From: Schizochytrium sp. TIO01
Taxonomy: Eukaryota > Protista > Bigyra: Labyrinthulomycetes
Reading direction: 5' to 3'
DNA: 64,000 nt
Assembly (NCBI GenBank): GCA_004764695.1
Contig: SMSO01000031.1
Coordinates: 8,724,761-8,788,760 of the forward strand
The position numbers were made by a program, and so were the translations under genes. The notes under the pieces are model-generated. The model made no database searches, was not told the DNA's origin, and saw only the letters and a list, made by a program, of their open reading frames with translations. Positions 2,089 to 61,509 of the stretch are shown one piece after another (position 1 is the first letter of the stretch; each line of letters starts with the position of its first letter).

Positions 2089-4635
2089 ATGCCTGCTCTG
2101 CGTTTTCTGCGACGGCAGTTCGCCTTTGGAGACGATGATCTACCTCTGCCGTCGTGCATGGGGTTGGTGTCGAGACTCCTGCTCATTACCGCACTGGTTG
2201 CAAGCTTGATGGTAATCAGAGACGTAGATTTTGCAGAAGATACAAGTCCATGTTCTAGCGATGAAGATGGCGTCGAGAAGGTTCAGGCTATAAGGATCCT
2301 TGCTATCATCTTGATCGCTTTGCTCAGCCTCACAACCTTCGTTTTGATGCTCCTCTTTCTGCATTCACTTCGAGGGACTATTGTGGATAGCGCAGAACGA
2401 TCACTCGTGATTCCACTTCTCAAAAGCGTTGTTTTTCTTGTTTCTAGCGAGGGTATTGCGGCTCTTGCAGGGCTTGGCCCTGCGTTGCGATCGGTGCCAC
2501 ATGGGTGCAAGGGCATTGCGGATAAGGATTTGCATCTAACCTTTCTGGTGGTCCGACTTGTGATTGTTGCTGTACTAGTAATGGCGACCTTCTTCTTTAC
2601 TTGTGGTTTCCTCACGGTGACCAACAAACGCACAAACTACACTTACCATCAGGGAAGTAGTGGGAGTTATAGCTCGCTGGATAGTAACTCACGGCCCCTT
2701 AGGGACTTTAATGGCGATGACGACCTGGATTTAGAGGACCAAGCCATGTTCTTCGTGGACGTTGAACATGCCACAGATTCAGAGGGCATGTCAATGTCGG
2801 TTACTCGCCTCGACTGGGAGAAAAGGTGCCGCAGGTGGTGCAGGTGCTTTCAGATTATCACCTGCAATATTTTTGGCAGTTCATATCACGAAGTCACCGA
2901 CGAAACATACCGAGACGTGGCCAACGTCATGGCACGATTTTTCAAGGGCATGGACGTTGTCCCGTCAGATCTGATTGCAGCTTTATGCCTCCTCCGTGCG
3001 GAGCAACGGTCAAAGGAAAAGGCTGCTGTTGACGCGCTCTTGAAGTCACAGACCTCTGGCCGCACACTTCGCCACGAGATTGAGCAAGAAATTACACAAC
3101 ATGTTGAAGCTGATCACGAACAGTCAGTCCACGAGTGGTTGTGGTCTGCAGAGAACTTGAAGTACAAGGCCAGGACTCTGTTACGCATTCAACACATTAG
3201 CGAAGCACGAATTGCAGTAGACGCAGATGCGCGGCAACTGTTAGCAGAGGCCAATCATTTTGCGCCGTACATGCTCGCCATTTATGGCAAACTATTGTAT
3301 ACGTATATGAATATTGTGACCGGCCCTTGCCAGCTACTGTGCGGAGAGCACTGCAAGTTTTGCCTTGGCCTTGCGGCTCGAAAGCGCAAGCGCCGTACCT
3401 CGGATGATAATATTTCTTCTCTTCGTCAAACCCACTCGAGTGATTTCTCTCAGAACATGCTAGATGACGACTGCTGTGGGTTAAATTACTCCGCTTTGCA
3501 AAGAAGTGCGATTGGAGGGCGAGATCCTGTCTTTGTCTTTGCCAGCTTTGGTAATCGCCCACATTTTCTACCTTATTCTATTGGTGTAGATGAAGAAACT
3601 CGCACGGTAGTACTGGCTGTCCGAGGTACTTTATCTGCTTCTGATATGCTTGTTGACGCTGTAGTAATACCACAATCCTTGCAAGCCTCTGCGGAGCGCT
3701 GGGGATTCTCGGGTATGATTGGAGAGGAATCCTACGCACATTCGGGCATGCTCCGCACGGCAGAGAACATGCGCAAGGACATTGAAGAAAGACACATTTT
3801 GCATACACTACTGTTAGGCGCCCGCGAGGCCAATGCTTCGTATGGCTCTTTCAATTCTAATCATGCCCAGCATGATCAGGCTGACCCGGAACGAAGTCTT
3901 CCAAATCGCCCATCCGCACGGATGAACGTTCATGACCTTTCGGATTTGCCAGATTGTAGAGGCTACAATCTCAAAGTTGTGGGCCACAGTCTTGGCGCTG
4001 GTGTTGCATCAATCTTGTCGCTTATGCTGCAGGACGCCTTCCCAGGCCTCACTTGTCTCGCATATTCTCCACCCGGATGCGTTTTTGACTTTGAACTTGC
4101 ATGCCGGTCAGAGGCATGGATCAAAAGTATTTTTGTTGGTAGTGACCTGATCCCTCATTCTTCTTGGGGTTCACTCATGCGATTGCGAGGTCAAATGATG
4201 GAAATGCTGCGGCGTAGCAAGGTGAATAAAGCAAAGGCGATCCGCTCAGCTATTCTCAATACCCCTGCTGAAGATCTGCTTTACCCTGAGGACGGCGTAC
4301 CAGAAACCTTTGCTCGTCGTCAACTTGCAATTCGAATTGAGCAGCTTCGCAAGCAAACAGAGGGGTCGGACTTTCTCAATCGCACGCCAATGTTTTGCCC
4401 TGGTAAACTTCTCCACATCATGCGAATTGACACCGTGCAAGAAGGGATGTGCTCTTCTCGTGACGAGTTCATGCCAACATGGGTAAGGGATCGCCGTACA
4501 TTGCACGAGTTTGATCTTGGATCTTCTACAAGAATGGCACTTGATCATTTTCCAGATGTCAGTGCATCTGTAATCGACCGAGTTGCCAAAGAATTCGCAT
4601 CTCTCGACGACCGTTTTCACGGGTTTCATGTATAG
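2089..4635 (+). CDS. sn1-specific diacylglycerol lipase (DAGL alpha/beta-like), class 3 lipase
   Basis: 848-aa ORF with four N-terminal hydrophobic helices, the 'DVVPSDLIAALCLL' DAGL segment, 'VLAVRGTLS', 'AHSGM', nucleophile motif GHSLGAG, 'YSPPG' and C-terminal 'DHFPD'. Confidence 0.88.
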   Translation: MPALRFLRRQFAFGDDDLPLPSCMGLVSRLLLITALVASLMVIRDVDFAEDTSPCSSDEDGVEKVQAIRILAIILIALLSLTTFVLMLLFLHSLRGTIVDSAERSLVIPLLKSVVFLVSSEGIAALAGLGPALRSVPHGCKGIADKDLHLTFLVVRLVIVAVLVMATFFFTCGFLTVTNKRTNYTYHQGSSGSYSSLDSNSRPLRDFNGDDDLDLEDQAMFFVDVEHATDSEGMSMSVTRLDWEKRCRRWCRCFQIITCNIFGSSYHEVTDETYRDVANVMARFFKGMDVVPSDLIAALCLLRAEQRSKEKAAVDALLKSQTSGRTLRHEIEQEITQHVEADHEQSVHEWLWSAENLKYKARTLLRIQHISEARIAVDADARQLLAEANHFAPYMLAIYGKLLYTYMNIVTGPCQLLCGEHCKFCLGLAARKRKRRTSDDNISSLRQTHSSDFSQNMLDDDCCGLNYSALQRSAIGGRDPVFVFASFGNRPHFLPYSIGVDEETRTVVLAVRGTLSASDMLVDAVVIPQSLQASAERWGFSGMIGEESYAHSGMLRTAENMRKDIEERHILHTLLLGAREANASYGSFNSNHAQHDQADPERSLPNRPSARMNVHDLSDLPDCRGYNLKVVGHSLGAGVASILSLMLQDAFPGLTCLAYSPPGCVFDFELACRSEAWIKSIFVGSDLIPHSSWGSLMRLRGQMMEMLRRSKVNKAKAIRSAILNTPAEDLLYPEDGVPETFARRQLAIRIEQLRKQTEGSDFLNRTPMFCPGKLLHIMRIDTVQEGMCSSRDEFMPTWVRDRRTLHEFDLGSSTRMALDHFPDVSASVIDRVAKEFASLDDRFHGFHV

Positions 4636-28170: not shown

Positions 28171-29422
28171 GCTTGCAGCTCACAAACCAAAACAAGTCTT
28201 CGCGAGCGAGCTGGACGAGGTTAGTAATCGAAGCCCGATCACGGAGGAGCTGCTAGAGTCGGTTCCTCAACCGAGAGTCTGCAATTAGAGTTTGGGATTG
28301 CCAGACTATGACCCTGACTGCGAATGGTTTCATTAGCTCATTTTTTATCATCAGCTAGTATTATTATGATTTCTTTCTCTTTTCTCCTTTTCCTCTCAAG
28401 TTTAACTATATTTTATGAAATGTAGTCCACAGCTACTCTTACTAATTTAAACTAGTATATCTTAGTAGATACTCATCGTTTCGTTCACTCTTTTACTCCC
28501 CCGAAGTAATTTTGTGCCTCTACTATAATATATGGTATATAAGTTCTATCAGTGAACAGGAGGGCCGTGCAGTGATGCGGAGAGATAGAGAGAGGCCGCG
28601 CGAAAAGCCATTTCTGCGATGAAAAAAGGCCGCTGAAAGAGGCCTATTAAAAGTGGCTCGCGCGCCAGCGACTGCACTATCCGTTCACGCAGGAGTGCAC
28701 ACCCTTATGGGTAAGTGATGGTACAAAGTACTGCGGATAGAGCACCTGCCGCGCGAAAAGATTGAAGGAATGGAAGGAGTAGGCTACTGAAAAGGCTTGA
28801 AATAATCGATTGATAAGGCTTGTGTGATCATATTACTGCTTAGGTGCATATAGAGAGTCAATTTCGATAATCTTCAGTAGTTCATCTTTAAAGTCTTAGA
28901 ATTGAAGGACGAAGGAGGATCTCTATTCGATGTAAAAGTACTTTACTCCATGGACTCCGGTTACTCTGAATTATAGGAAGTGTAGTAGAGAAATAAGTAG
29001 GTTCCGGGGAGAATCAAGCAGAAACACGGTGCTGGCGTGGACAAGTCGGTAATTTCAGAGAAGTTGAGAAGCGCAGTGCATAACACCGGACACGTGTCAA
29101 GACGTGTCGCAGGTGAACTACGAGACAGTGGTGTGGAGTGCAACCTCAGAGACATTGAGACTTAGAAATCGAGAAACCCAGTATCGTTCGCTCACCCGCA
29201 TTTGCTGCGATTTTGCACCTTGCAGCTACTTACGACCGACACGAAGATTATACACGAAGAGATTCTGCGTCGCAACGACTTATGCGTATCAGGCAGTGAT
29301 ACTGCATCAGCAACCAGCAACCTAAACTCCTCCACCCGCAATTCATAGGCTAGTGAACCACTAAAAGCGAGCCTAGAAAGTGCAATAAATATTTCGCACA
29401 AGCAAAGGAGTTGTTGAGCAGG

Positions 29423-31363
29423 ATGGCCTACCGCACACAGAGTTCGGGTACGATGCCACGTGCTAGATGGCCAGAGTCAGAGGATACGAGAATTGAGCAT
29501 GAGCAACTACGCCCACAGTCTGCGTCAAGGCGGCGAGAACTTGCCAAAAGTAGATCTCCAAGCAAACAACGCCGGAACCTTGGAGGGCCTAGCGCAAATC
29601 TCTTAGCTAGAACAGCTTCATATCAGCGACAGTTGACAGCTACAGCCTCTGTAGATGAACATATGCAGTATACTTCACGGAAAACACTCACCAGAAGGCG
29701 TACAACTTCTTCTTCTTCAAAAACTATTCATGATGAGATGACGGATGTCCCAATCAGCAGCGATGACTCCTCCGATGATGACGAGGTGCAGTCGCGCGCG
29801 AGTAGAAAAACCCGCGCAACAGTTCATCGGGAAGCAAATGGCATATGGGTTAGTAGCGACGACGAGAGCGATGACAACGAAGTTAAATCACAGCAATGGC
29901 GAAGTCGCCGCTCAAGACGAGCTCACTCTTATCGAACTTCTGAAGGTTTAGCCGCATACTCCGATACAGATATCCGCATGAGAAGTGGGAGTCGCTCATC
30001 GGCCTCATCATCCACTTTTCTAGACCAATATCAGCAGCAAAATAGAATAAGCTCTTTCCAGCAAGCTCAGCAAGAACACTTCTCATCACAACAAGGTGGT
30101 AGCAGTGGCAGCAGCGGCGGCGGCGGCGATTCGGAAGGACCAATGAGATTTCAGAGTCGAGCTAATGCACCCCCAACGTCGTCACCGACAGCGTCTTCGC
30201 TCGGTTCGAATAGATCTTCCCGTTATTGGTCTTCGTCAAGCTCTGAGACAAGCTCCATTAGTGGAAGCATTGGAGAAACTACACTCCGGCAACGAAGGTC
30301 CCGAACATCGTCAATCGCCCATCTTGGTACGCAGCCAGCGCATGGTGCTGGAGGTGGATATGAATCATTCGACTCCGTAAGTCTTGCATCTACAGTTGCT
30401 TCAGAGGCTACGGGTTATATGTCTGCAGCATCCTTAGATCGTCGTAGTATCCAAAGGGGTATCCACCATTCACGTGCGGGCGGATATCGTGCTTCTGGGC
30501 TTAGTCAAGGCAACAACACAGCAGCTTGGGGAGGCATTTCGTCATCTGTGACCAATTTTGCCACAAATTTACATCAACATAATTCTTACAGTGAACAGGG
30601 CACTATTTACGAGCATCCTTCGTCGATGCCTTCCGGCGTATCATATGTCTCATCAACGAGTTCGTCCCCAACTATTCATTCACAATCACAAGAGTGTATC
30701 GGTCCGCAACAAGCTCAATACCAGCTATCGCAATCATCAAATCCACAGCGGCAAATGTACGAGGGAATGCTTACGCCTATCCAACTCCATGCTGTACAGT
30801 TCTGGGATCCCGATGGAACAAAGGCTCTTCTCGCGGATCGGGGTAGCACAGGAGGTGGGATTGCAGTTGGAGTGTCTCTTTTCGCGTTCGGATTTTGGGC
30901 ATGGGGCCTTGTCGTTTTTGTGTTGACTATTTTGACTGCAAGCTCAGTTTCAACCATGTATCGTCTGTCAAAATGGCGAGGATCGAGTGGCATAGAGCAG
31001 CAGGCGCTCTTTAATGAAATGTACGAAATTGTAGAACAAGTCTGTACCGATACTCGAATTACTTTACCAACTGGAGAGATGCGTCCCAGGCTTGTATGCG
31101 CTGGTGAGCTTGGCACAGCGCTTGACCGGCACTTTCCTGGACTCGATGAGGCAACCAAGTTACGATTCTGGACAGAAGCCTGTGTTCATTTCCGGCTTAC
31201 ATTGCGCAGTGGTTGCCATCATCTTGGACAGGGCAAACTTCATCCCCGCAACCTAGCTACGTCTACTCTCGGCACAATGACAAAGAATTTACCACATGGG
31301 ATTTGCCCTAGTTGCGATAACAAAATTGCAATTGAAGCTAAATTTCCACTGAAATGTGACTAA
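29423..31363 (+). CDS. Hypothetical membrane protein: long Ser/Arg-rich disordered N-terminus, hydrophobic segment, small C-terminal domain
   Basis: Long uninterrupted ORF (first ATG at 29423) with the hydrophobic stretch 'IAVGVSLFAFGFWAWGLVVFVLTIL'. Confidence 0.7.
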   Translation: MAYRTQSSGTMPRARWPESEDTRIEHEQLRPQSASRRRELAKSRSPSKQRRNLGGPSANLLARTASYQRQLTATASVDEHMQYTSRKTLTRRRTTSSSSKTIHDEMTDVPISSDDSSDDDEVQSRASRKTRATVHREANGIWVSSDDESDDNEVKSQQWRSRRSRRAHSYRTSEGLAAYSDTDIRMRSGSRSSASSSTFLDQYQQQNRISSFQQAQQEHFSSQQGGSSGSSGGGGDSEGPMRFQSRANAPPTSSPTASSLGSNRSSRYWSSSSSETSSISGSIGETTLRQRRSRTSSIAHLGTQPAHGAGGGYESFDSVSLASTVASEATGYMSAASLDRRSIQRGIHHSRAGGYRASGLSQGNNTAAWGGISSSVTNFATNLHQHNSYSEQGTIYEHPSSMPSGVSYVSSTSSSPTIHSQSQECIGPQQAQYQLSQSSNPQRQMYEGMLTPIQLHAVQFWDPDGTKALLADRGSTGGGIAVGVSLFAFGFWAWGLVVFVLTILTASSVSTMYRLSKWRGSSGIEQQALFNEMYEIVEQVCTDTRITLPTGEMRPRLVCAGELGTALDRHFPGLDEATKLRFWTEACVHFRLTLRSGCHHLGQGKLHPRNLATSTLGTMTKNLPHGICPSCDNKIAIEAKFPLKCD

Positions 31364-32674
31364 TTTGAAACACTTTGCTATATTCCTGTGCAAATTTCTT
31401 TATACAATGTTTTATTGTGATCAATAGTACTTCCATAATCTCAAATTAAGATCCTTCGCAAGTCTACTCTTGTATACATACTTAATCAGAAAATATATTA
31501 TGCGTGTTTGCCATGTTTTCCAATATTCACAGATATATTTAACGTTTAAATTGTTTCCCCTGATTTACCAAATCTTGAAACAGAATTGCACCTGATACAC
31601 ATTTGCCATCTCTCCATACCATTGATAAAACAGTTCTTATTAAGATAAAGACAAGAGCGGTCGTTGCAAGTCCTAGATTTCATATATAGCTAAATAGCAA
31701 ATGTGGAGCTCTAGGTAATTTTTTTTAGCATGTGTATGGATCTATTGCAATGAAAAGAGTTATGGAAGAGCTGAGCATAGCGTATTCGTTGCTTTAAGGC
31801 CAGAAAATTTTCCTAATGTATGATGTCTTGGTTGAAAAGGAAATTTAATGTGTTTGTCTTTTCCCGAAGAGTTAAGAATTCTACCGGATATTTCAAGAGT
31901 GGGCAGTGAATATGCATATAGCTACTAGATTCGACATTGCAGTAAATCGGTGTCCCGGTTTTCCGAGGAAATGATCTCTTTCAACTGAAATAGAACAAAG
32001 ATAAATTCTGGTTCTATCCCTGTTAATTATCGCACAAGGTGCGCGCGCACGCTACTCACTAGTCGTATGGGAACAAACACTTCATATTCTACTATTACAA
32101 AGTCGTGCACAGGTTTAAAATTTAAAGAAAGTTACATTTTAATATTAGTGCTCCTTTTTCAGCTCTTCTTTCGGAAGAATAACTTTGCTCTGCAACGTTC
32201 TCGACATGATTACTCTTTTCAAGAGCATTAACTGCCGTGCGCAGATACGTTCTCTAAGACGTATGTCTTGCACTTCGATTCCAGTATTTGAAACACGTCC
32301 CATCACAACAACTCCTCCGTATAGTTATATCAAGAAGTTGATTCTTGAATCTCCAGTTCCAAATGGCCACACGCAAAAGTTCCTAGAGGACAAATAAATT
32401 ATACATCAGCATTATTTGCACAATTAGCACTTGCACTCTCCCATAGCCTAAGAACAACGAGGGTCCTCAATATCAACAGTCACACCCATCATGCATGCTC
32501 CTACAATTCCTGCGAAGGCACATATTCATACATCTCGGACAGATGCTCTCAACATCACATTTACAATTCTGCGCAAATCGCATGCATCTCAGACAGCATA
32601 ATAATACTCAGAATGTCCTCTCTACTAATTATTTAGGTCTTTGTTAAGGGATGGAGATTAGGTAAGAAACTGGA

Positions 32675-32988
32675 ATGGCCAAGGAACCACCAACTCCAAA
32701 CACTACAAGTGGAATCAAATCTTCAATTCAACTTACCAAGAACTTCAACCAAAAGTTTGGTGCCTCAGCAAGTGCCCTTCGGGTGCTTTCCCGGAGGCAA
32801 TCGCATATACGCAAGTGGCACCTATGGCTGCGGTTTGTTACGCCAGGGTGCCCTCCGCCAAACAAAAAGAGAACTCCAACTGCAGGATTGGTGACCTCTA
32901 GCGTGTCTAACCAGACGCCTCCGCCGTCTACAAAGATGTTGGTGGAGGGTTTAGCTTCAAAAGGACGGGCTTGTGCGCCCTCCTGGAC
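32675..32988 (+). pseudogene. tnpA: IS607 TnpA serine recombinase relic (N-terminal HTH plus start of catalytic domain)
   Basis: Manual translation across frames gives 'QKFGASASALR', 'FPGGNRIY' and, from 32836, 'CYARVPSAKQKENSNCRIGDL*RV*PDASAVYKDVGGGFSFKRTGLCALLD'. This matches the IS607 pattern YARVSSxKQ...KDxGSGLNFKRxGLxxLLD. The catalytic Ser position reads Pro and there are two stops. Confidence 0.88.
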
Positions 32989-33360
32989 TACCGAGATACA
33001 CTGCAAGCTTGCACTTTGGTTCTGTGACAACAATCCTTTTGCCTAAATCTGACACCTCAACAGGTTTACAAGAACGATCGAGATCAACAACGATCGAGAT
33101 CAAGACAGCTCAAATGCTGAGTCGTTGGCCTCCGGCAAGAGCTCATCCACAACGCCGAGCTTCTCCCGTGCCAGTGGTGTAAAGCGGTTCTTCGCCGAGA
33201 GGGTTGCACTTCAATACCATGCAATGAATGTAGGTGGTACCATCCACGGAACATCCAAGGTTTTCTAATGTCCCCCCAAAATGCAAACGCGTAGCCGACC
33301 GCGATACCCACGCCGCCAAATGCATGCATCCCTTGGCGCTACCTCTCCAAGGACATGATT
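32987..33360 (+). pseudogene. Fanzor2/TnpB relic, C-terminal half (bridge helix, RuvC-II, zinc finger, RuvC-III)
   Basis: Frameshifted segments read 'TTEIHCKLALWFCDNN / ILLPKSDTS / IEIKTAQMLSRW / RQELIHNAELLPCQWCKAVLRREGCTSIPCNECRWYH / SKVF*CP / KCKRVADRDTHAAKC / RYLSKDM'. Confidence 0.88.
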
Positions 33361-33555
33361 CAAGAGTTGTCTTTGAGTTCCGGGTTCGCGATTGGGCCTT
33401 AGCCCCGTTTGGCACAGTGGGAAATGCAAGTTCTGCAAATTTTATAGGGTAAATTATAGGCGTCTTACCATGATATGACTAGGAAAAAGACGAACAGAAA
33501 AAGAAAGAGTCGAGGAAGGTAACAAATCGACAAGGAGCAACAGACCCTTCCCTCG

Positions 33556-36036
33556 ATGAGTCGCAAGGCCGTGGGCCGCTGGCAGCTCGAGCGCAGGCTC
33601 GGTGCGGGATCCTTCGCCAGCGTCTTCCTTGCGAGCCGCCGCCCAGACGGCGGGGCCGTGGCCGCTCTCGACGCCGGGCTCCGGCAAGATGGCCTCAAGA
33701 AGAACGACGCCGGTGACGACGGTGCCGACGGCGACGTGCAAAGTCACACTGCTGAGAACCAGAGCCAGTATGGAATGATAGGAAACAACGCAGGCCCGTG
33801 GCCAGAAAGGGTGGCCATCAAGGCCATTTCTAGATCAAAATTAACGAAAAAGCTCGAGCGGAATTTGCAAAAGGAGGTCTCAATTTTGCAGGGTTTGGTG
33901 CATGACAATATTGTGGCATTGCTGGAGACCGTCGAGACAGGGAGACATATTTATCTAGTAATGGAATACTGTGCAGGAGGAGATCTCCACGCACTCCTTA
34001 AGTCTACAGGACCGCTGCCAGTGGATCTAGCGAGACACTTTGTACGACAGCTTGCGGATGGTATGCACTTCCTGTGGTCGCAGAACCTCATCCATAGGGA
34101 TCTCAAGCCACACAACTTACTTCTCACAGAAAGGTCGATTCGTGGCGTACTTAAAATTGCAGATTTTGGATTCGCAACGCATCTCGAGGCGGCAGCTATG
34201 GCAGACACCATGTGCGGAAGTCCACTCTACATGGTAAGTTCATTTTGGAGAGAGAAAACTTGGTCTTAGATTGTAAAGGTTCACGAATTCATCAGGCCTG
34301 ATTTTGGCCTTTGTGGTTTCATAAATTAGAGAAAGCTGGAAATCTGGAGAAAACTAACAAGAGACAACTTTTATGATGTTATTGGCAATGTATTTGTTTG
34401 AAAACACACATTTTACAAACAGGCACCAGAAGTTCTCGATGGGAAGCGCTATGATAGCCGTGCTGATCTATGGTCAGCCGGCACTATTTTGTTCGAGATG
34501 TTGATAGGAAAGCCCCCCTTCCAGGGATCATCTCCACGCGAACTTTTGCGAAACATTTTACGCAGTCCGTTCCGATTTCCTTTAGAAAAAAGAGATTGTC
34601 CGGGTGATTGCATTAGTTTACTTCAAAGTTTGCTCATGGCAGACCCTAACCAACGAATCACCTTTGAGGAATTTTATGAACATCCTTTCCTGCGAGAAGA
34701 CATCAATCCGGACGAGGCGGCTCTTCGCGCTCTCTCCTCTTCGTCCTCAAGCGACAGTGAAGACTCCAATCTTCCAGACTCAGCAGATGAAGACTCTGAT
34801 GGAGAATTCAAGGGGAAGAAGAAAGAATTAACCACAGATGATGATCCACCACATAGTAGCGGGCCAAAGGCAAAGGGTTTACTCGATCGTGTAGTGAATG
34901 GTCCAGGACCCTCAAGCCCAAGTGAAGAAACATGGGAGATCATTCCCTCGTCACAACCTGAGTCATTCCGGAACCGTACACAAAGTGATCAGCAACCCTC
35001 TCGGAACTCTCCACCATTACATCGTCGTGCCTTTCAGCCACTAGTAAGGGGTGCTTCAGGGACTGGGCTGAGTAACCATCATCACAACCTCTCCAAGCAA
35101 CCCAATCACCAAATGGGAGCTGTTTCTGGAGGTAGCACGCAAGCAACGAATCTTCCACGAACTCAAAAACAAGTAGCACCAGGCACTGCTGTAACCGTCC
35201 AAGCGCTGCGTTTCGCTGGAGAACTTACAAAGCGAATTCGTATCTTGGTAGACCTTGCTCGTGATCTCGCGTCCGATGGCGAAGCTGATTTCGGCATCAC
35301 ACGTAACCTGACCATGGCACATTACCGTAATTTACCGTCAATATCTCTTGTTCTCATAGTAAAAGCCCTGAAGCTGCTTACATTAGGTCTTGACGCTACA
35401 GAGCAGGCTGCAGGAGTACTTGATCAGACCTTGCTTCGAGCAGCACGTGTAACTCGCGACGAAGTTCGCAGCCTCTATGCAGAAACAGCTCGACACGGTG
35501 AGCAAATTCGTAAGCAGGCTCGTCAAATGGCAAGTATGGATCGAACACCTAGTGCAGAGAACCTTATGATTGAAATTGCTTTGCAACTTGGACAAGCTTG
35601 CGCGACTAGTGTTTTGCGATGTCAACATAATGGATCTGTCCAGGACCAGCAAACTTCGTCTAAACTTAGCCATACTGAAGCAAACAATCACGAGTTAGAT
35701 CAGATGCAGAGTTTGGGAGAAACCCATACACCTCAAGAAACACAGAACAACTATGTTGAAGATACCGACGTACACCATGGTGAAAACTTTATCTTAGATG
35801 GCAATGCTGGCCAAGCCAGTAACACTGACTGTAAACATGGGGATACTAGCACTACCCCACATGATTCTGGTGGCTCTGAGCAAACTCCGCGCGCAGCATC
35901 AATTCGTTCGCTTGAAATTGCGATTGTTATTCTCGAATTACTGACTTGTGATCCAAATGTACCGAGTACAGAAAAAGACCGTATCATGGGCCTGAAAGCA
36001 GTCTTTCTGCAACGGAAACGAAGACTTTGTTCATAA
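33556..36036 (+). CDS. ATG1: ATG1/ULK-family Ser/Thr kinase, 2 exons (33556-34233, 34423-36036)
   Basis: 'LGAGSFASV', VAIK, 'HRDLKPHNLLL', 'LKIADFGFA', 'TMCGSPLYM|APEVL...DLWS'. The GTAAGT...ACAG intron (34234-34422) joins the two ORFs in frame. Confidence 0.88.
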
Positions 36037-36122
36037 TTTAAACTGATACCTAGGCCTATTTAAACTTTGATAAATTCTGAATGAACTTCTTGCTCATTTA
36101 TACTCAAGCGTTACCTTTTGAC

Positions 36123-36268
36123 TAGCCAGTTAACCACAGATTCACCTACGGCAGGAATAGCAGAAATAAGATTAGTAATAACGGTAGCTCCCCCAAAAGA
36201 CATTTGACCCCAAGGTAGAACATATCCAATGAAAGCGGTAGCATTAAAAAAAAAATAATAATAATGCC
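36123..36268 (-). pseudogene. cob: NUMT fragment of mitochondrial cytochrome b
   Basis: Minus strand reads [40 protein letters not shown], the invariant cyt b segment, with the conserved W replaced by G. A frameshift lies next to the upstream T-run. Confidence 0.93.
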
Positions 36269-36270
36269 TT

Positions 36271-36390
36271 TTTGATAAAGTGTACACCGAAATCGTAGGT
36301 CAATCTGGTTTGCGATTCACTTATGATATTTCATACCGTTTGCTAGATCGAGGTATTCTTGAAATCTTGGGACCTTTTGGGCTGACTAGC
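36271..36390 (+). pseudogene. nad5: NUMT fragment of mitochondrial nad5 (C-terminal region)
   Basis: Reads [40 protein letters not shown], matching the Nad5 'FDxxYN...SYKxxDKGxxExxGPxG' segment. Confidence 0.85.
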
Positions 36391-59609: not shown

Positions 59610-59916
59610 CGCGGTGTGTCCTTCGTTTTCAGGGGTCGTGCCTCAAACAGATCTCGCTCCGCAAGTTGACTTCATCAAGACCGGAACCCTCGTGAGACGC
59701 ATGAGATAATAGCTTACGCGAGCAGAGCGGACTTCTCAAAGGGACACGATTCTTCGCCATCGATGCGAAATGTGCAAACTTGGGATCGCGGAAACTCCAC
59801 GCATGAAAACGTTAGAGGTTACGTAACTTCCGAATGGAAGTTTTTATTTCATGGAGGTGATATGTTAGAGTTATTTAGGCCTTTGCTAAGAGGTGGGGGC
59901 GAGGTAAGAAAATGGC

Positions 59917-60390
59917 ACGGCTAAGGAACCACCAGCACAGACGGAGGAAGCCAGCAAAGTAATTCAACCAAAAGCCTGGCGTCTCAGCAAGTAAACTTCC
60001 GGCGTTCCACTGGAAGAAACTGCATCATCGCATCTATGGATGCGGCTCCGGAGCCCGCGAGCAACGCAGCACTGACCGTACCATTATCTACGGCATGCAC
60101 CAAGCAAAAGGGGAACTTCAAATGTCTGATTGGTGATCTCCAGGGTGTTTATTCAGACGCCTCTGATGTCTATAAAGACATCGGCAGAGAGATCAACTTC
60201 AGGAGGCCGGACATGTTCGCCCTAGCGGACGATGCCTGCCTGTGACAGCTGCGGACTTAGTCATGCATCAGTATTAACTTGTGCGAATCGCCATCGACCT
60301 CCTTGAGCACCTTTTTCGAAAGAGTAAATGTCAAACTTCTGGTGTACGGCCAAGCTGCACACGCAGGAGACTCCAACACCTTACACAGGA
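59917..60390 (+). pseudogene. tnpA: IS607 TnpA serine recombinase relic
   Basis: 'FNQKPGVSASKL', 'TIIY', 'TKQKGNFKCLIGDLQGVYSDASDVYKDIGREINFRRPDMFALAD', 'LVRIAIDLLEHLFRK' across frameshifts and stops. Confidence 0.85.
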
Positions 60391-60419
60391 ACCATATTTG
60401 TTGACAAAATCTAAACTAA

Positions 60420-60860
60420 CTTGGCGAAAAACTATGCCTACCTACGCGCACTCCTCAAAATCACAAACAAGACTACCGAAATTCACCATAAGTTTACACA
60501 TTGGCTCTGTGAAAACTATCGCATTATTTATTCTTTTACCTAAATTTGACACCTCCTAGATAGTCAACAAGTTGACAAGACGGGACAAAAGCAAGTCGGT
60601 TCGAGTGATGTGTCGTTGGGCCATTTTAGCTTTGCCAAGCGTCCATTCACAAACGCGAGCTTTTCCTCTGGTGAAGACTTGTTATTTGCCGAGGGGATTA
60701 CACCTCAAAAACATGCAACGCAAGTGTGACCAGCTAAGATAAGCTCGAAACATCCAACTTGAAGGTTTTCAAATGCCCAAAATACAATCATGTAGCCGAT
60801 CTTGATATCCACACCGTCAAAGGCATCCTTCTGCGCTATCTATCCGGGGACATGATCTAA
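60420..60860 (+). pseudogene. Fanzor2/TnpB relic, C-terminal half
   Basis: 'YAYLRALLKITNKTTEIHHKFTHWLCENYRII / ILLPKFDTS*IVNKLTRRDKSKSVRVMCRW / IHKRELFLW*RLVICRGDYTSKTCNA / LKVFKCPKYNHVADLDIHTVKGILLRYLSGDMI*'. Confidence 0.9.
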
Positions 60861-61509
60861 AAATTGTCTTTGAATTGTGGGTCACGTTTTAAACCTGTGA
60901 TTGGGCCTTAAACCACTTTGTCGCCATAGAAAATGCAAATTTTGCAAATTTTATAGGTGAATTACTAAGTGTTCACACTGGGCTTATGTTCCAAATGTTC
61001 ACAACGGACAAATTCGCGTTATAAGAGAAGGGATGGCGTACGCAGCGAAGCAGAGAAAATCACCTTCCAGGGTAGCCCTTGGAGAATTGGTGTTTGGAGT
61101 ACAGATGCAGAGGAAACCAATTCGAGCTTAGTTTGTTTGTGACGCTTTCTAGATGGTACATATATGTGCATTAGCTTTGAGATAGCTTGGGTAAAGGTAG
61201 CTGAGAAAAAGAGGAGGGGGTTGGTGTTTCTTGTTTCTTATTACAAAACAAAGTCCTCTGCTTTCCGCTTTGTTATACAGGCACGGCAACTCCTAGAAGA
61301 AGAGTAGGGCACTGGTTTGGGTCTAGCGGAACGTTAGTGCGAAGAAAGTAGTTCCGTCTCGCGGACCTCGGAAGCTGCAGGACTTAAGCAAGAGACTTTG
61401 CTGTTTATGCGCGGGAGGGAGCGAATCAAGAAACGCTCTGCTGTTTGAAGAGAAAGACATTTATTCCTCGTAGCGCAAACCACGTGAGTGACTGTCAACT
61501 ACATAAATC

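Follow-up and report, generated by a model that had tools for sequence, protein, structure and literature searches.

The window, the whole 64,000-nt stretch of Schizochytrium sp. TIO01 DNA that we analyzed (C30:8724761-8788760, in an assembly of 64.07 Mb in 37 contigs), includes a ULK/ATG1-like Ser/Thr kinase gene, and the DNA directly upstream of it holds the decayed remnant of an IS607-type transposon, whose intact relatives in the same genome combine the serine recombinase TnpA with a predicted nuclease of the Fanzor2 group. The remnant occupies window positions 32623-33462 on the + strand, is 0.84 kb in length and does not code for protein. We have little doubt that the transposon family behind it is old, non-autonomous and of IS607 type, and that this copy, truncated at its 5' side, is inert. 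A preliminary description of this DNA had placed the relic at 32629-33459, a few bases off the recognizable element, and its right end about 100 bp before the kinase start; the distance to the ATG at 33556 is 93 bp. The parts of the locus, and a second relic in the window, are the following.

32623-32988, + strand: TnpA-derived half, with a leader, a MerR-like helix-turn-helix (HTH) remnant and an N-terminal stretch of the catalytic domain of the serine recombinase (tblastn E = 1.4e-20)
32672-32813, + strand: MerR-like HTH remnant, within the TnpA-derived half
32833-32988, + strand: serine-recombinase catalytic domain, N-terminal part, reaching TnpA residue ~137
32851-32853, + strand: nucleophile codon, now Pro (YARVPS; intact copies have YARVSS)
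32979-33002, + strand: family-wide deletion junction (between about 32988 and 32989), TnpA codon ~137 joined to Fanzor codon ~520
32989-33360, + strand: Fanzor2 C-terminal remnant, in three frames (tblastn against Fanzor residues 520-646, E = 8.7e-11)
33351-33462, + strand: non-coding right end (RE), ending in ...TATAGGCG (RE profile match at 33351-33460, E = 1.8e-22)
33463-33555, + strand: single-copy spacer of 93 bp from the RE to the kinase start codon
33556-36036, + strand: ULK/ATG1-like Ser/Thr kinase gene (exon 1 33556-34232; intron 34233-34421, GT..AG, 189 bp; exon 2 34422-36036)
59795-60977, + strand: copy 2, a second relic, of the old lineage (profile and tblastn comparisons)

Translation of the three forward frames of 32600-33500 recovers all the peptide strings that had been quoted from this intergenic-looking DNA: GASASALR in frame 1, FPGGNRIYA in frame 2, VCYARVPSAKQKE and AVYKDVGGGFSFKRTGLCALLD in frame 3, and after these TEIHCKLALWFC, ILLPKSDTS, LRQELIHNAE, WCKAVLRREGCTSIPCNEC and VADRDTHAAKC. 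By tblastn, residues 2-137 of an intact TnpA from the same genome (L031:2870-3568) align to 32672-32997 in three frames (linked E = 1.4e-20), and residues 520-646 of the intact Fanzor align to 32990-33360 (E = 8.7e-11). Both protein matches are on the + strand and in the order TnpA, then Fanzor, which agrees with the order given before. At the DNA level, an nhmmer profile made from 27 other short copies aligns 32623-33483 with E = 5.5e-235. The E-values rule out chance similarity. The Fanzor2 remnant contains the RuvC-II region (ILLP), the alternative Glu (REGCTSIPC), a degraded zinc finger and RuvC-III (ADRDTHAAK), and Fanzor2-type residues are found in REGCTSIPCNEC and ILLPKSD. In the translated searches that had been proposed as a check, the intact TnpA and Fanzor of this genome match the relic; six stop-free pieces of the relic have no resolvase or TnpB match in Pfam, and just one weak, irrelevant match to Pox_E10. 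Pfam is silent because the pieces are short, decayed and split between frames, and the homology established with the genome's own intact proteins is unaffected.

The preliminary description had also proposed that this genome hosts an IS607-Fanzor2 family and that a genome-wide search might find an intact parent. It does host one, and intact TnpA+Fanzor parents are part of it. In a six-frame genome search, the Pfam Resolvase family (PF00239) has 30 matches, 12 of them without an internal stop, and Cas12f1-like_TNB (PF07282) has 43, of which many belong to frames open for over 660 aa. At more than 15 loci a match to one family is paired with a match to the other on the same strand, about 1.1-1.5 kb away. 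Full-length copies fall into about 21 young elements with 94-100% identity over 2.2 kb, four with 80-90%, and at least three old ones with 67-69%. Our reference element (L031:2756-4961, 2.2 kb) has, in its map of open reading frames (ORFs), a TnpA of 232 aa and, downstream on the same strand, a Fanzor with a predicted length of ~492 aa. Of 17 young copies examined, at least 7 have an uninterrupted reading frame for each of the two proteins, and the IS607-Fanzor2 elements of this genome appear to have been recently active. An MMETSP transcript encodes a predicted protein with 92% identity to the parent Fanzor over 601 aa, and therefore transcription of the family takes place in this marine microbial eukaryote or in a close relative. 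More distant relatives, with about 35-48% identity, are numerous in metagenomes, among them one named "transposase A625R" after a chlorovirus gene. The viral contigs that we scanned with the Fanzor protein include no close relative. The Fanzor frame is open for 646 codons (L031:2910-4850, + strand), and nearly the whole of tnpA lies within it in a different frame. The overlapping part is also contained, with 92% identity, in ORFs of 601 and 617 aa from MMETSP transcripts. A basic stretch resembling a nuclear localization signal (RKKRARTKARKTTKK) is found ahead of the Fanzor HTH.

The parent TnpA has PF00239 at residues 83-216 (5.1e-20) and a weak MerR/HTH_17 match at residues 28-66, and its best matches amongst solved structures are all catalytic domains of IS607-family TnpA proteins (6dgc with 1.1e-18, 3ilx and 6dgb). 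The parent Fanzor matches PF07282 (1.5e-13), PF12323 (1.4e-9) and, weakly, PF01385. Its best solved match is the mimivirus "TnpB-like protein L79" (9b0l), a Fanzor2, with 3.7e-19 and the best stretch at query residues 284-483. The motif of the parent is DPG-145-E-6-CxxC-14-Cx4C-D. The DPG at RuvC-I is part of ALDPGVRSF at residue 290, a region deleted in the relic. In alignment to L79, the alternative RuvC-II Glu is six residues ahead of the first CxxC (QESYTSKTCNEC), and the canonical site reads VILLPKFE. The strict Fanzor2 expression from the literature (DPG..E-x6-CxxC-x12-18-CxxC-x4-8-D) does not match the parent, and the sole reason is its second knuckle, CPNPKC (Cx4C); once Cx4C is allowed there, the expression matches residues 290-475. 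The adjacent IS607 TnpA, the L79 match, PF12323 and the A625R-like relatives, rather than a formal tree, are the basis on which the parent nuclease would group with Fanzor2 and the IS607 TnpBs and not with Fanzor1.

The reference element has no inverted repeat between its left end (LE) and its RE, that is, no terminal inverted repeats (TIRs), and the flanks of about 40 copies contain no target-site duplication (TSD). The terminal dinucleotides differ by lineage: the old one has (C)TG-TACC... at the LE and ...AAGTG at the RE, and the young one (C)AG-TATG... and ...AAGAG, although individual copies do not always match. IS607 elements insert by recombination at a matching dinucleotide. The difference between the lineages suggests a core that co-varies at both ends, and would fit a change of the crossover core. 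Five young elements carry an identical 294-bp insertion at TnpA codon ~28 (between L031 2951 and 2952), located at L078:493-786, L037:2440-2733, L077:2367-2661, C13:2774694-2774987 and C13:5455965-5456258. The insertion contains a telomere-like (CCTAA)5 and is without GT..AG ends, and the TnpA-disrupted subfamily defined by it has multiplied nonetheless. Three young full-length elements are 0-90 bp from the left terminus of an old copy (L071:2532-2562, L073:915-1002 and the L077 flank after the RE); two of them are arranged with left end towards left end, and past the RE of one the sequence continues ...CTGTACCTATG. These positions suggest that TnpA targets sequences like the element's own end.

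The relic belongs to a short family. A DNA search with 32629-33459 gives 49 matches, most of them of ~0.8-0.9 kb over the whole query with 65-74% identity. When 30 short copies are placed on the full-length element, 28 have the same breakpoint, in which L031 ~3271-3279 is joined to ~4467, and the deletion removes 1.19 kb (L031 ~3272-4466) between TnpA codon ~137 and Fanzor codon ~520. The 24-mer that spans the junction occurs at 51 genomic sites, the window copy included, with at most 3 mismatches, and the reversed control at 0. The short family probably has nearer 100 copies, by our estimate that about half of the true copies would pass the 24-mer filter at about 15% divergence. A 32-bp deletion in the HTH, which alone frameshifts TnpA, is common to all old-lineage copies, full-length and short. 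Three further indels in the Fanzor remnant (-10, -7/11 and +6) are present in the short family only and absent from the old full-length copies. The window copy has all four. The shared junction and signature indels therefore assign the window copy to an old amplified non-autonomous family of ~0.9 kb, and not to an element that decayed in place.

Decay in place is what the preliminary description had implied: an autonomous full-length IS607-Fanzor2 element inserted here and then underwent its own independent deletion and frameshifts. A TnpA N-terminal part fused to a Fanzor C-terminal part with stops and frameshifts is what such an event would leave, and copy 2, in the same window, has its own different deletion. 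Copy 2 retains its LE (59798-59867), has a smaller internal deletion, which leaves TnpA up to residue ~189 and Fanzor from residue ~507 onward, and is without the short-family indels. However, an identical junction in 28 of the 30 short copies examined and at 51 sites effectively refutes decay in place for the window copy, and a recombination hotspot at the junction would leave the shared small indels unexplained; we consider it extremely unlikely. The missing N-terminal part of the Fanzor and the frameshifts reported earlier are real, but the deletion and several of the frameshifts were not acquired at this locus: the shared indels mean that the frameshifts between GASASALR and FPGGNRIY, and those within the Fanzor part, are largely inherited, and the deletion comes from an amplified non-autonomous master with at least 51 copies. 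The short copies are 11-18% from the family majority (15.2% for the window copy), with pairwise identity of about 75% and transition-biased substitutions. This star-like divergence suggests one old burst followed by neutral decay. Mutation of the kind known as repeat-induced point mutation (RIP) was set aside as its cause, as GC content is not depressed and the substitutions are an ordinary transition-biased mix. As the master was already non-coding, we infer that it was moved by TnpA supplied in trans.

The window copy has further lesions. The ~70-bp LE terminus (CTGTACCTAYGAAAACG... in other copies) is missing, a correction to the preliminary description: the nhmmer match starts at profile position 127, and positions 57-126 are unmatched. 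An LE-only profile finds nothing on either side of this copy, and finds copy 2 at 59798-59867. The right flank (TCTTACCATGA...) has some resemblance to the left terminus of the family; it is below significance and was dropped. That the copy is dead, as had been stated, is borne out by the nucleophile Ser changed to Pro (YARVPS for YARVSS, at 32851-32853), by stop codons at 32899 and 32908, and by the loss of the N-terminal three quarters of Fanzor. Aligned to the profile of the 27 other copies, it also has private deletions of 12, 42, 8 and 9 bp and two 4-bp insertions, together with a 16-17-bp tandem duplication at about 33073-33105 and an 11-16-bp deletion that removes the 3' arm of RE hairpin 1. 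With the LE terminus, the catalytic Ser and part of the RE hairpins lost, the window copy is therefore incapable of moving and of providing a guide RNA.

The last bases of the RE are ...CTAAGTG in old copies of the family and ...CTAAGAG in young ones, with A or T as the next base, and in the window copy the end is at 33462. In intact copies, the fold of the 120 nt past the Fanzor stop codon consists of two hairpins, of 13 bp and 5 bp, and a third stem (three to four hairpins in all), with z-scores of -4.6 and -6.0 (0 of 200 shuffles fold as well). For the window copy z is +1.08, and 172 of 200 shuffles fold as well. RNAalifold on all 38 right ends returns no structure, the decayed copies swamping the signal, and we used single-sequence folds and a count of pairs on lineage representatives instead. 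Across 14 such representatives, 86% of the cells are paired compared to 32-45% with slid partners. In five pairs both partners have changed, and the covariation measures are equaled by 11-35 of 500 shuffles. A search of Rfam at E <= 1 with the intact element and the window locus reports no omegaRNA-type family. These results give modest support to a conserved structured RNA at the RE, a candidate omegaRNA/reRNA scaffold. A three-stem right-end RNA has been described for IS607 TnpB and Fanzor2, and the RE folds found here are consistent with it (PMC10711439). One contig of the sequencing run X3 (record 27, matching window 33326-33360 and 33421-33447) is 478 nt long, has a depth of about 1771 compared to about 41 for the kinase mRNA, and consists of the 3' end of a young-type Fanzor, the RE and 319 nt that flank an element at another locus. 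A strongly expressed transcript with the right end of an intact element may be its source, contig depth being unreliable for level.

A structured RE raises the possibility that the window copy is itself a working guide cassette, with an omegaRNA whose guide is taken from the flank past 33462 and used in trans by the Fanzor2 of intact copies. The short family does keep the whole 3' ~490 bp including the structured RE, and the hairpins are kept with some compensatory changes between lineages (the 86% of paired cells and the five covarying pairs). In the window copy, however, the 3' arm of hairpin 1 is deleted, the fold is no better than that of shuffles, the sequence is 15% from the family majority, and with the LE lost homing would restore nothing; we give a working cassette practically no chance. 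For the family as a whole, we consider it unlikely, if less so, that the ~0.9-kb elements spread as guide-RNA cassettes made of two TnpA-recognized ends and an omegaRNA scaffold, of which this remnant was possibly absorbed into the 5' transcribed region of the autophagy kinase. Each insertion would then give the Fanzor2 of autonomous copies a new guide and so secure its own retention by RNA-guided homing. If true, guide-only TnpB derivatives would have a counterpart in a eukaryote, based on a serine recombinase.

The kinase gene had been labeled ATG1. Its best solved structures are indeed the kinase domains of ULK2 and ULK1 (2.4e-32), but Pfam gives a generic kinase domain only (Pkinase, 2.8e-41 and 1.3e-16 for the two exons searched separately). 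The spliced joint of the gene (34232 to 34422) is found in contigs of runs X3 and X14, which come from different studies and have different organism labels, and is absent from the DNA run X18. X3 and X14, in which the intron is removed, are therefore RNA-derived. The spliced kinase contig in X3 starts at 33397, 65 bp inside the right end of the relic, and another X3 contig spans 32091-33382; in X14, contigs cover 32354-33377. Neither X3 nor X14 covers the upstream intergenic stretch at about 31392-32090, which argues against plain DNA carry-over. RNA thus includes the relic, which probably belongs either to a long 5' region of the kinase transcript or to a transcript from upstream. Run X1 has the left flank only and no kinase exon, and is uninformative on expression. 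The comparison of related strains for an empty site, suggested earlier, yielded none: the insertion is present in every run compared, under three organism/strain labels, with less than 1% differences.

These contigs bear on whether the relic has been co-opted as promoter, transcription-start or 5'-UTR (untranslated region) sequence of the kinase, which would be compatible with a dead non-autonomous origin. The X3 contig that begins inside the relic, the coverage of the relic in X3 and X14 next to a bare upstream stretch, and the insertion in all the runs compared speak for it. Yet RNA contigs give neither strand, starts or ends, nor level; the depth over the relic is about 10-24 compared to 41-90 over the kinase gene; k-mers from other copies of the repeat can seed contigs; and the decay of the relic, which differs by 15% from the family majority, looks neutral, like that of the other copies. 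We see co-option as possible and rather doubtful.

Two other features flank this region. Upstream, a 650-aa Ser-rich ORF (29411-31363, + strand) has no Pfam match at E <= 0.01, and its 3' end is covered by RNA contigs (X14, 31000-31391). Just downstream of the kinase gene, a 59-codon open frame (36111-36290, - strand) reads as a cytochrome b fragment. An X18 contig matching 36126-36200 has a depth of about 1463, compared to about 50 in the flanks, and the fragment is probably a nuclear copy of mitochondrial DNA (NUMT).

We propose the following history for the relic as a dead member of the short family. The parent is a 2.2-kb element without TIRs, with an IS607 TnpA followed by a Fanzor2 and a structured RE that is the likely guide-RNA scaffold. 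One lineage would have lost 32 bp of the TnpA HTH, and then the 1.19 kb from TnpA codon ~137 to Fanzor codon ~520, with more small indels. The resulting ~0.9-kb non-coding element, with both ends kept, would have been spread to at least 51 sites by TnpA from autonomous copies, after which the short copies would have decayed neutrally to 11-18% from the family majority. The window copy would have landed, or later been truncated, just upstream of the ULK/ATG1-like kinase gene, and today would simply be part of the upstream and 5' transcribed region of that gene. The homology, the membership of the family, the shared junction, the lesions, the intact parents and the presence of the relic in RNA contigs are observations. 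Several points weigh against this history. Mobilization in trans is deduced from the pattern of copies and not observed, and the neutrality of the relic is likewise deduced. The LE terminus may have been lost at landing or through later truncation. For the family, the crossover dinucleotide is a candidate and the left boundary approximate, the RNA-guided activity of the parents' Fanzor is putative, and the RNA contigs over the relic are compatible with a role in ATG1 expression.

The relic itself is of little weight: a dead transposon fragment in the upstream region of a gene is ordinary, although the family is real. The family is of moderate interest, with at least 7 copies in which both genes are open, elements that are 94-100% identical, and a 92%-identical MMETSP transcript. 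An old high-copy non-autonomous derivative that keeps the guide-RNA region, together with young parents, would make a natural system for studying the cooperation of a serine recombinase and an RNA-guided nuclease in a eukaryote. The family is also a source of a compact Fanzor2, a predicted nuclease, for which the right end is defined.

Eukaryotic and giant-virus IS607-type elements with Fanzor2 were described in 2013 by Bao & Jurka (ACa-1/-2, ISvMimi_1/2 and ISvAR158_1; PMC3627910), and Fanzor2 nucleases were shown to be RNA-guided in 2023 (PMC10530073; PMC10711439). Eukaryotic IS607-Fanzor2 elements are thus already known, and the family reported here adds another example. In those features of IS607 and Fanzor2 that can be compared from sequence, the family appears to belong to both. 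As in IS607, the parent TnpA has an N-terminal MerR-like HTH and a C-terminal serine-recombinase domain, the reverse of the resolvase order, and the relic keeps the HTH and catalytic remnants in that order; the best solved TnpA matches are those of ISC1926, ISC1904 and IS1535; a TnpB/Fanzor gene is downstream on the same strand; and there are no TIRs and no obvious TSDs. What sets the family apart is that it is nuclear and eukaryotic, that its copies fall into two age classes, and that it includes a non-autonomous derivative with an internal deletion and a high copy number, of which the window copy is a truncated non-coding remnant. Yoon et al. define the Fanzor2 group by a DPG in RuvC-I and by a Glu at an alternative site, six residues ahead of the zinc finger, the canonical position being non-acidic (PMC10711439). 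The parent shares with Fanzor2 (Acanthamoeba polyphaga mimivirus L79/ApmFNuc, 9b0l; chlorovirus A625R-type) the DPG, the alternative Glu and a non-acidic canonical residue, as well as an N-terminal HTH_OrfB_IS605 domain (PF12323), a length of about 490 aa and homologs named "transposase A625R". It differs in its second zinc knuckle, Cx4C and not CxxC, and from mimivirus L79, to which the match is partial, in the canonical Glu position. The Pro that had been presented as a mark of Fanzor2 at that position is true of the family in this genome and not of Fanzor2 generally, as L79 has Gly there. The relic keeps only the last ~127 residues' worth of such a protein, out of frame. Finally, the short family resembles the deletion derivatives called MITE-like (after miniature inverted-repeat transposable elements) and the TnpA-less or TnpB-only derivatives of IS200/605 and IS607 in being internally deleted, non-coding, with ends kept, and, as we infer here, amplified in trans. 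It differs from MITE-like derivatives in that its parent is a serine-recombinase element without TIRs or TSDs, and in that the guide-RNA-scaffold region is retained.

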